Positions 39,306 through 42,038 of a DNA stretch of 64,000 nt are shown in pieces. The stretch is from contig NC_134030.1 in the NCBI RefSeq assembly GCF_964204645.1, positions 8,227,122 to 8,291,121 of the forward strand. Direction: 5' to 3'. Source of the stretch: Tubulanus polymorphus (Eukaryota > Animalia > Nemertea). The notes under the pieces are model-generated. The model was given only the letters and a program-made list of their open reading frames with translations. It was not told the DNA's origin and searched no databases. The translations under genes and the position numbers were made by a program. Numbering within the stretch: the first letter of the stretch is position 1; every line of letters starts with the position of its first letter.

Positions 39306-39619
39306 GAAATTTTTCGTATAATAGTCTATTCTTTTAATTTAGTTATGGATTCTCCCTGCATCATTGGGGGTTGGGCCCTTTTTACAAAGGCTACAGCGTA
39401 TTAAATCACTCTCAATTTGTGAAACTTCTCTGAACTAGCGGGGGTGACGCATATTTTGGATTTGGGAAATTTGATAGGTTCCACATAGCTTTTCATAACT
39501 CTCACCTAGGCCTGGATACATTGATGAAAATTTAGTTATCACTGACACCAATAGGCCTAGATAAATTATGTTCATTTTGATAAAATGTAATGTACAAACA
39601 CTATTATCAGTAGTAATGT

Positions 39620-40152
39620 ATAAAATAATAAATTGCCATAGTACCTTGCGATAATTGTTACCATGATATTCATCGCGTCGTTGGCTTTCTTTTTTGCTTT
39701 CACAGCGGAGGCTTCCAAAATCTCAAAAAATGTGAGTAAATAACGCTTAATTAAACTTGTATACTTATTTTGTTTTTGACATCTGCGAATTTCACGACGT
39801 TGCCACTGGCACAGTTTTCAGATTTGAGTCAAAATTTTGAAGGAACGATAACCATCGAAGATGTGAGTAGAAATCAATATTTTCACATAAAATAATAAAT
39901 TGCCATAGTACCTTGCGATAATTGTTACCATGATATTCATCGCGTCGTTGGCTTTCTTTTTTGCTTTCACAGCGGAGGCTTCCAAAATCTCAAAAAATGT
40001 GAGTAAATAACGCTTAATTAAACTTGTATACTTATTTTGTTTTTGACATCTGCGAATTTCACGACGTTGCCACTGGCACAGTTTTCAGATTTGAGTCAAA
40101 ATTTTGAAGGAACGATAACCATCGAAGATGTGAGTAGAAATCAATATTTTCA
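39620..40152 (+). repeat. 267-bp direct tandem duplication covering exons 1-2 of the EPDR-like gene
   Basis: 39620-39885 and 39887-40152 read as identical; ATGs at 39663 and 39930. Confidence 0.95.
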
Positions 40153-40995
40153 ATTTTTTTTAAATAGAATAATTCCAAACAAAAACTAATGATGATCATT
40201 CCTTGTTCAAGCAATAAACGTTCTTCTTCACTTAACACAAATCTCATTAGCAAGGTAATTTTATAGACCATTTACTATGGGGGAGCGAACTACGGCAAAG
40301 CTAAAATAGAATACGATGGTGCAACAAAACGTTCCAAAATATCCGATATCAATCTTGAAAATTCGGTAGGCGTTAATTACAGACCAGCGCAAATAAATGA
40401 TTTTAACGAGGTTAGTAGAGAGTTAAATGTAGAATATAGTAATGAAATCGAGCCAACACTCAAATTACTGGAATTCGTTTTTTTAACTATAGGATGTCGC
40501 TTATACATTGGGTGACGGTGACGATACTTGTAAAAGGGATACTGATTTATTGCCGTGGTACAGTGATCTGAATAAACCATCGTCAGCCGGGCCATGTTCA
40601 ACATCCGTTGATGGTAGCGAATGTTCTTTCGAATGGAAGAACGGAAAATGTAAAGCTTCGGGGAAACGGCGCTTCGTTTTTTTCCTTCTGATCGGGCAAA
40701 GCATATAATAGTTTTAATTTCTTTCCTCATGCAGATGAGTACAGACTGACGATGGATACATCTACGGGTCTACCGATCGCTTCCGAAATAACGACGACGC
40801 AAGGCCAAGCATTCAATCTCTTCCAAAGAAATATCAGGTTTTGAGCGCTACATATTTTTCTTATCAAATATATACGCCATGTACTTGAATATACCCAAAA
40901 CTGGGTGCTCTCTTCTTTCCAGATACCGCGTTGATAAAACTGGTAGCGATAGGATGTTGCAAATACCGTCTACTTGTGCCACGATCGATAATTAG
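39663..40995 (+). CDS. Secreted ependymin-related (EPDR/LolA-fold-like) protein, ~197 aa, 6 exons
   Basis: Exons 39663-39731, 39815-39862 (duplicates at 39930-39998 and 40082-40129), 40267-40410, 40493-40649, 40735-40837, 40923-40995. GT-AG introns, mostly 82-85 nt, with consistent phases. Signal peptide MIFIASLAFFFAFTAEA; TATAAAA at 39619; AATAAA immediately after the stop. Motifs KIEYDGATKRS, TCKR, LPW and C-terminal QIPSTC resemble EPDRs. The exon 1/2 junction has two possible splice solutions. Confidence 0.8.
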
Positions 40996-42038
40996 AAATA
41001 AATAAATGTCTGAAAAAATCTACTACCGTATAGGTTTTCTTATGATCTTTTCATTTGGGTCGTGTTATGTTCTACGTCCATTCTCCGTAGTTCTTGGGTC
41101 CACATTAGTAAGGCCAAAGCAAAAGTGGGTATAAAAGTGACAATTGCGGCCCTTGCCAATCATCCAAGTCCCAAATAATAATATTGGCATAACACATAAT
41201 TGCCCAAAAAACCAATCTGGGATACCAAGTCAAATTTAAGTTTGAACACTTTTTAGTATTTTCTTGTGAAAAAAGTAGGCAGTTTTTTTAAGGGCCTTCA
41301 TCATCTTTCTTAAGAAGGAAGCACTTACGAAACTCACCTATGAAGCTAGTTATAATTTACCCGATGGTTTGGATTGAATGCGACATCGCTGACGAGACCT
41401 CAAATGAAGGAGGGAAGGCACTGGAGCATTCGTAGCAGTTATTTTCTACTTTGAGGATATATCACTACTTACAAATACAGTCAAGGAAGTAACACATCAT
41501 TTGTTTATGATATCATCTATTCATCAATGGATATCTATGGTCACACAAATTTTGAATGACGTACAATTATTCACTTCCAACATTTTTTAAGCATTCACTT
41601 TTTGACAACAGATTCTCTGTGAGACCTCTTTCCTTTTGCCTAGACACAGTACGCAGAAAAACATCTGTACGCCTAACACTCACTGTACATGTACTGAGCA
41701 TGTGACTGGCATCACCCCAGCAATAAATAGCGTAAACAAAATGCAGTCAAGGCTATTGCTAAAAAATATACACCAGTGGAAAAACTGATAACTTGACATT
41801 TTAGTATTCATTTTGGCACTGAGATTCTACTAAGTCTATTCGAATATAGCCGAAAATGATTTACTGTTATGAATTCCGGTCACAGCAAATAAGACATTAG
41901 AGAGCGCAGACTAATGGTTCCAACTGTCTTTGCTCCAAAAGTGTCCCAATCAGGCTTTTTCAACCAGTTTTCAAAATCAATCTAACCCTATTCGCATAAT
42001 TGCAATTGTACAGCTGTCAAATAAGTCTTAGTACATCA

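Follow-up and report, generated by a model that had tools for sequence, protein, structure and literature searches.

Ependymin-related proteins (EPDRs) form a widespread, functionally obscure eukaryotic family with the LolA fold, which has repeatedly been expanded and co-opted in marine invertebrates. In crystal structures of human EPDR1 (MERP1), an elongated ligand occupies a deep hydrophobic groove (Wei et al. 2019; PMC6363788), and bacterial LolA proteins are free of disulfides (PMC6363788). McDougall et al. (2018) found cysteines at positions 23, 94 and 186 in all three EPDR profiles and a further one at position 148 in profile 1 (PMC6280359); the disulfide pairs proposed are 94-186 and 23-148, and Pro150 is conserved (PMC6280359). 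Here we analyzed a stretch of 64,000 nucleotides from the nemertean Tubulanus polymorphus (C6:8227122-8291121; hereafter the window), eukaryotic DNA of 36-40 % GC from a 268-Mb, 77-contig assembly, and within it a spliced gene that an earlier note, made from the DNA letters, had called a divergent four-cysteine EPDR. The locus is a real, single-copy, protein-coding spliced gene of this worm (RefSeq LOC141907319), and we consider it likely that its product is a probably secreted, very divergent descendant of the EPDRs with a predicted LolA-type fold.

As listed below, six exons on the + strand (39663-40995) translate exactly as the earlier note had written them. A script check found GT..AG boundaries at all five introns, the phases being 0,0,0,1,2 and four of the five introns being 82-85 nt long, and the single reading frame, the TATA box and the AATAAA motifs were all present as claimed. 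The same note had taken the gene to be hidden, which is not so, since its product is already annotated in RefSeq, though unnamed, as XP_074653027.1 ("uncharacterized protein LOC141907319", Tubulanus polymorphus, 213 aa). This entry uses every splice junction of the six-exon reading, but includes exon 2 twice. Whole-protein analyses were performed with XP_074653027.1 (213 aa) or its sub-range 40-213, and residue numbers follow this entry.

39619-39625, + strand: TATAAAA box, 44 nt 5' of the first ATG, read directly from the sequence.
39663-39731, + strand: first copy of exon 1; start codon, 17 hydrophobic residues that resemble a signal peptide and end in AEA, then SKISKN; phase-0 end; residues 1-23 of XP_074653027.1.
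39815-39862, + strand: exon 2, copy 1; 16 codons (48 nt), phase 0 on both sides, FEG motif; residues 24-39 of XP_074653027.1.
39930-39998, + strand: second copy of exon 1, with no difference from the first; intronic in the RefSeq model, and the would-be first exon of transcripts from the proximal promoter.
40082-40129, + strand: second copy of exon 2, with the same sequence as the first; spliced in as an additional in-frame exon in the RefSeq model.
40267-40410, + strand: exon 3; 48 codons with the YD...R...D block.
40493-40649, + strand: exon 4; 52 codons plus 1 nt, with the central Cys116 (C-x-K), P-W and the new Cys138/Cys147 pair.
40735-40837, + strand: exon 5; phase 1 at its start and phase 2 at its end, G-L-P-I versus C-I-P-I of EPDRs (Pro kept, Cys lost).
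40923-40995, + strand: exon 6; C-terminal I-P-S-T-C motif (Cys208) and TAG stop (40993-40995).
40997-41006, + strand: two overlapping AATAAA polyadenylation-signal motifs just 3' of the stop, read directly from the sequence.

The predicted protein begins with 17 hydrophobic residues ending in AEA|S (mean hydropathy of residues 2-14, 2.36), a signal-peptide-like N-terminus similar to those of both true EPDRs of the genome, and from these features it is probably secreted. Its length of 197 or 213 aa, depending on whether exon 2 is counted once or twice, compares with an EPDR family median of 213, and the mature part is acidic (isoelectric point [pI] ~4.5) and about 19-22 kDa in size. The only N-glycosylation sequon is N23. 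Four cysteines are present (116, 138, 147 and 208), none of them before residue 116, so that the earlier description of the cysteines, with none at the N-terminus, the central and C-terminal ones kept and an extra GPC...EC pair, was correct.

Two canonical EPDR genes are found in the genome, P0004 (190 aa, C1, + strand) and P0003 (192 aa, C4, - strand), which are 69 % identical to each other and are named 'mammalian ependymin-related protein 1-like' in RefSeq; each has six coding exons with intron phases 1,0,0,1,2. The last intron of the C4 gene is 1215 nt long. The candidate gene likewise has six coding exons of similar sizes, and its last four intron phases (0,0,1,2) are those of both true EPDR genes, while the first intron differs (phase 0 versus phase 1). 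In all three genes, a phase-0 intron precedes the central Cys by exactly 13 residues, in the same column when anchored by a hidden Markov model (HMM), and 13 residues, again exactly, separate the codon split by a phase-1 intron from the conserved Pro that follows it. Of the outer introns, one precedes YD by 16 residues in the candidate and by 15 in both EPDR genes, and the other precedes the C-terminal Cys by 18 and 20 residues, respectively. These landmarks were chosen after the alignment had been seen, and hence no formal probability is attached to the matches. The intron evidence is alignment-independent and covers both halves of the protein, and it is very unlikely that four phase matches and two exact positions arose in unrelated genes.

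At the protein level, the candidate has a size (197/213 aa) similar to that of P0003 and P0004 (190-192 aa) and has in common with them a signal-like N-terminal peptide, YD..R, Y-x-L, the central Cys, I-P and the C-terminal Cys, and its P-W is as in P0004. It differs from the two proteins in being only ~21-25 % identical to them, in lacking Cys23 and Cys151, and in carrying D-RMLQ-IP-STC instead of their invariant DPNVFIPP.EC box. The extra Cys138/Cys147 pair is found in the candidate only, and its pI of 4.5 compares with 5.2 and 7.8 for the two canonical proteins. Both of these, unlike the candidate, pass Pfam.

An EPDR-only alignment and HMM were built from 15 EPDRs that match the Pfam model, P0003 and P0004 among them, with the candidate excluded. 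This HMM matched the candidate at 5.1 bits (E = 9e-4 as a single planned comparison, Z=1), and 1 of 3000 composition-matched shuffles scored as well. BLASTP against P0004 yielded an E value of 0.018 and hhalign against EPDR one of 0.027, both alignments spanning one co-linear region that begins at the YD...R block and extends to C-x-K...P-W. Placed in the fixed EPDR alignment, the candidate kept 16 of the 42 near-invariant columns, versus 9.7 ± 2.5 in re-aligned shuffles, among which 4 of 200 reached 16. Eleven columns are invariant in all 16 sequences (YD, R, Y, the central C, P, G, P, IP and the C-terminal C). Exon 3 forms the core of the HMM match and is the only exon with pairwise similarity to true EPDR exons (z 2.9 against exon 3 of the C1 EPDR gene); exon-versus-exon alignment was suggestive for this exon only.

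The cysteines follow a coherent pattern. Both partners of the 94-186 pair (human C113 and C210) are kept as Cys116 and Cys208, in invariant Cys columns of the 16-sequence alignment, while both partners of the 23-148 pair are lost together, Pro150 being kept and the Cys at 148 being replaced by Gly (G-L-P-I). Downstream of the conserved P-W, a new close pair, Cys138/Cys147, has appeared. The paired loss and paired retention fit the linkage in PMC6363788 and the pairing proposed in PMC6280359, and would be expected of a true homologue; the loss is coherent but departs from the profile. A spiralian precedent is found in Capitella teleta, two of whose EPDRs are without two cysteines and are still members by alignment and phylogeny (PMC6280359). 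These deviant EPDRs were found by the family HMM whereas the candidate was not, and the likeness is drawn from the paper's mention of them.

A model of the exact protein in the ESM Atlas, made without an alignment, had a predicted template-modelling (TM) score of 0.65. In two ESM Atlas runs, the best structural neighbor was an Ependymin cluster, with TM scores of 0.69/0.61 over 163 residues and 0.61/0.63 over 170, followed by LolA, DUF2092 and DUF4292 clusters at 0.55-0.67. By language-model features, 13 of the 30 nearest ESM Atlas clusters were Ependymin.

A series of results weighs against the EPDR assignment, and the first of them also favor a different explanation, in which the locus encodes a lineage-specific secreted beta-rich protein unrelated to ependymins and the shared motifs, cysteines and introns are coincidental. 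The Pfam Ependymin model (PF00811; gathering threshold, 32.3 bits) gave no match at E ≤ 10 with the whole protein, with residues 40-213 or with single exons, so membership as proposed earlier failed in Pfam at both levels; run over the genome, PF00811 found the two true EPDR genes exon by exon (C1 and C4, the positive control) but not the candidate locus. The pairwise and profile scores given above (E 0.018-0.027; 5 bits) are weak. Sequence statistics support only the N-terminal half, because the C-terminal half alone was indistinguishable from shuffles against the EPDR HMM. A word-index search with exon 4 came back blank, a 52-aa piece being unable to reveal a full-length relative in such a search, and the whole protein returned only itself. 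Since the family scans and the word search had left the protein open, exon 4 was sent to an exhaustive HMMER search (phmmer) of 1.8 billion representatives, in which no true relative was found beyond XP_074653027.1 itself (residues 104-155, 100 % identity). AlphaFold2 was uninformative: without an alignment it gave a mean predicted local distance difference test (pLDDT) score of 37 and the model was discarded, and with the EPDR alignment, an input not independent of the hypothesis, it gave a weak all-beta model of ~10 strands with a mean pLDDT of 50.4.

Further results count against EPDR descent in other ways. The Cys at position 23, part of the N-terminal C-x-x-P in all three profiles, is absent, with Ser/Asp aligned to it. 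Conservation is not measurable, because no orthologue or paralogue was found; a search of the genome for the paralogues that had been envisaged returned none, the gene being single copy. Foldseek with the pLDDT-50.4 model was uninformative, with nothing in the PDB at E ≤ 0.001; its rows at TM ~0.3 with this weak model included frog, human and mouse EPDR1, LolA, MucB and GerS. The top ESM Atlas feature match was DUF8395 (streptophytes; 0.94-0.95), not Ependymin. With the same weak AlphaFold2 model, VIA-align was likewise uninformative, recovering only a 60-residue beta-meander (Z ≤ 6.3) and no specific match. In a phmmer search of PDB sequences, single exons had no match and the whole protein gave only chance rows at E > 1, with no EPDR1 among them.

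Against an unrelated protein stand the two shuffle tests (1 in 3000 and 4 in 200), the four introns that match in phase, two of them at identical landmark distances and including the C-terminal half, the coherent disulfide logic, and an alignment-free language-model structure nearest to Ependymin. We thus regard coincidental resemblance as unlikely. Most likely, the EPDR relation holds as descent with a probable fold and not as canonical membership, the protein failing the Pfam threshold and Cys23. Of the earlier call of a divergent four-cysteine EPDR, descent is supported by the HMM, the invariant residues, the disulfide pairs, the introns and the ESM Atlas, while Pfam, Cys23 and the C-terminal half speak against full membership.

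The fold data also bear on whether the protein might have a LolA-type fold but stem from another eukaryotic LolA-like lineage, such as DUF8395 or an unnamed flatworm cluster, and not from EPDRs proper. In this direction point the leading feature score of DUF8395, that of the unnamed Platyhelminthes cluster (0.93-0.94), the TM scores of 0.55-0.65 reached by bacterial LolA-clan models, and the only Pfam trace of the protein, MucB_RseB at 12.6-12.9 bits (E ~0.1), which is below its cut-off of 22.3 and belongs to the LolA/LolB/MucB-RseB clan. We take MucB_RseB to be a LolA-type domain. Arguing the other way, Ependymin was the best structural neighbor in both ESM Atlas runs, DUF8395 had no match in hmmscan of the protein, and the EPDR-specific disulfide positions, YD..R, the C-terminal IP..C and the intron map match the worm's EPDR genes; bacterial LolA proteins have no disulfides. 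An origin outside EPDRs proper is, in our view, highly improbable.

With the bacterial LolA/LolB/RseB-MucB proteins, the likeness of the candidate is at the level of the fold, as ESM Atlas neighbors; it differs from that superfamily in being eukaryotic, putatively secreted and disulfide-bonded, and spliced, and has no significant sequence similarity to it. The unnamed flatworm cluster has 136 members, mostly from Platyhelminthes (237 aa), and together with DUF8395 it is as close to the candidate in feature space as the Ependymin clusters are. Both may represent further unrecognized EPDR/LolA-like families.

Human EPDR1 is among the closest known proteins for comparison. The candidate would share its LolA-type 11-stranded sheet with a hydrophobic groove, and it has kept the C113-C210-type Cys pair, the lid-loop Trp (P-W) and the C-terminal P-S-T-C motif. 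It differs from human EPDR1 in having no equivalents of C42-C172 or C88-C222 and no N130-type sequon, and in having a new cysteine pair in the lid-loop region. For the human protein, the homodimer and hydrophobic-ligand binding have been shown.

From these comparisons, we propose that the protein would fold as a LolA-type curved beta-sheet (half-barrel) with a hydrophobic groove. The Cys116-Cys208 disulfide, corresponding to human C113-C210, would be kept and would tie the C-terminal tail to the sheet, while the N-terminus would be free because the tethering disulfide (corresponding to human C42-C172) is gone. The lid loop would be without its conserved N-glycosylation site, and the gained Cys138/Cys147 pair probably staples a remodelled loop. 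By analogy with EPDR1, a hydrophobic small molecule or lipid would probably be held in the groove, either extracellularly or in the secretory/lysosomal pathway. The roles in lipid binding, mucus or signalling that had been suggested earlier are speculative. A more specific version would make the protein a nemertean-specific, fast-evolving ependymin derivative, its N-terminus freed and its lid loop re-stapled, that has been recruited to carry a small hydrophobic molecule for defense or signalling outside the cell, in mucus or proboscis secretions, which we hold to be quite improbable.

The 5' end of the gene contains a feature that went unmentioned in the earlier reading. Positions 39620-40152 consist of two 267-bp units in perfect tandem duplication (Tandem Repeats Finder gave 100 % matches without indels, and the alignment agrees). 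The unit, of which the 268-Mb genome has only these two copies, includes the promoter-like A/T box, exons 1 and 2 with intron 1 between them, and the initial ~23 nt of intron 2. The A/T box of copy 2 (39886-39892) reads CATAAAA versus TATAAAA in copy 1, since the repeat starts at the second base of the box. In the RefSeq model, splicing runs e1-e2-e2'-e3, and residues 24-39 of XP_074653027.1 equal residues 40-55; the 197-aa form of the earlier reading uses one copy of exon 2. Both forms are in frame, because exon 2 is 48 nt long with phase 0 on both sides. The duplication is probably very recent, or possibly an assembly artefact, and would allow two products, the 197-aa form or the 213-aa RefSeq form with a repeated 16-residue N-terminal segment. 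If the protein were indeed a carrier in secretions, the duplication of the promoter and exons 1-2 would represent an ongoing change in dosage or in N-terminal structure.

The duplication also enters into the question of whether the locus might be EPDR-derived but non-functional or unexpressed, with the annotated product a prediction-only model and the repeat an assembly artefact or a disruptive recent event. In keeping with this are the insertion of a repeated 16-residue segment into the annotated product, the extreme divergence from paralogues, and the database record, whose sole entry, XP_074653027.1, is a predicted (XP_) one and a single cluster member, with no transcript-derived copy in the protein collections. 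Yet all 197/213 codons are open over six or seven exons, with canonical splice sites, start, stop, TATA and AATAAA; residues of structural importance are kept, as are both cysteines of one disulfide; and the duplication itself keeps the frame. That the frame has stayed intact while identity to any relative is only ~20 % speaks for selection on the open reading frame (ORF), since a neutrally decaying copy would not keep it open at this divergence. We therefore judge a non-functional or unexpressed locus to be a poor explanation, quite unlikely on this evidence.

Taken as an EPDR descendant, the protein illustrates how far a family member may diverge, to the point where the family model no longer detects it and only intron positions, disulfide logic and predicted fold still betray the ancestry, and an unnamed RefSeq protein gains a defensible family assignment. 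It would also be a natural example of an EPDR scaffold with one conserved disulfide exchanged for a new lid-loop pair, and it could help to map the parts of the EPDR scaffold that govern ligand choice. The finding is modest and fairly ordinary, with no new kind of system, and is relevant to EPDR evolution and nemertean secretions.

Some further features of the window and of the searches were noted. An 840-aa protein (P0002) scored E 2e-7 against exon 4 and was dismissed as a repeat artefact, as it consists of ~20 near-identical ~40-residue repeats and gave no aligned stretch. The longest ORF at the locus is an antisense one of 117 aa (40377-40730, - strand), which runs across parts of exon 4 and intron 4; a plain ORF track probably displays this ORF in place of the spliced gene. 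It was rejected as a real gene, since it overlaps a database-confirmed spliced gene and has no support of its own. Upstream, a tRNA-Ser (anticodon AGA) lies at 39224-39305 (+ strand), 358 bp 5' of the ATG of the gene; it scored 64.7 bits against the Rfam tRNA model, was also called by ARAGORN, and is the only tRNA or Rfam match in the window. Finally, the most GC-rich stretch of the window (48.5 %) contains an uninterrupted ORF of 683 codons (46602-48653, + strand), whose Ser/Thr/Lys-rich, low-complexity product has no Pfam match; the ORF probably represents one large exon of a gene for a disordered protein.

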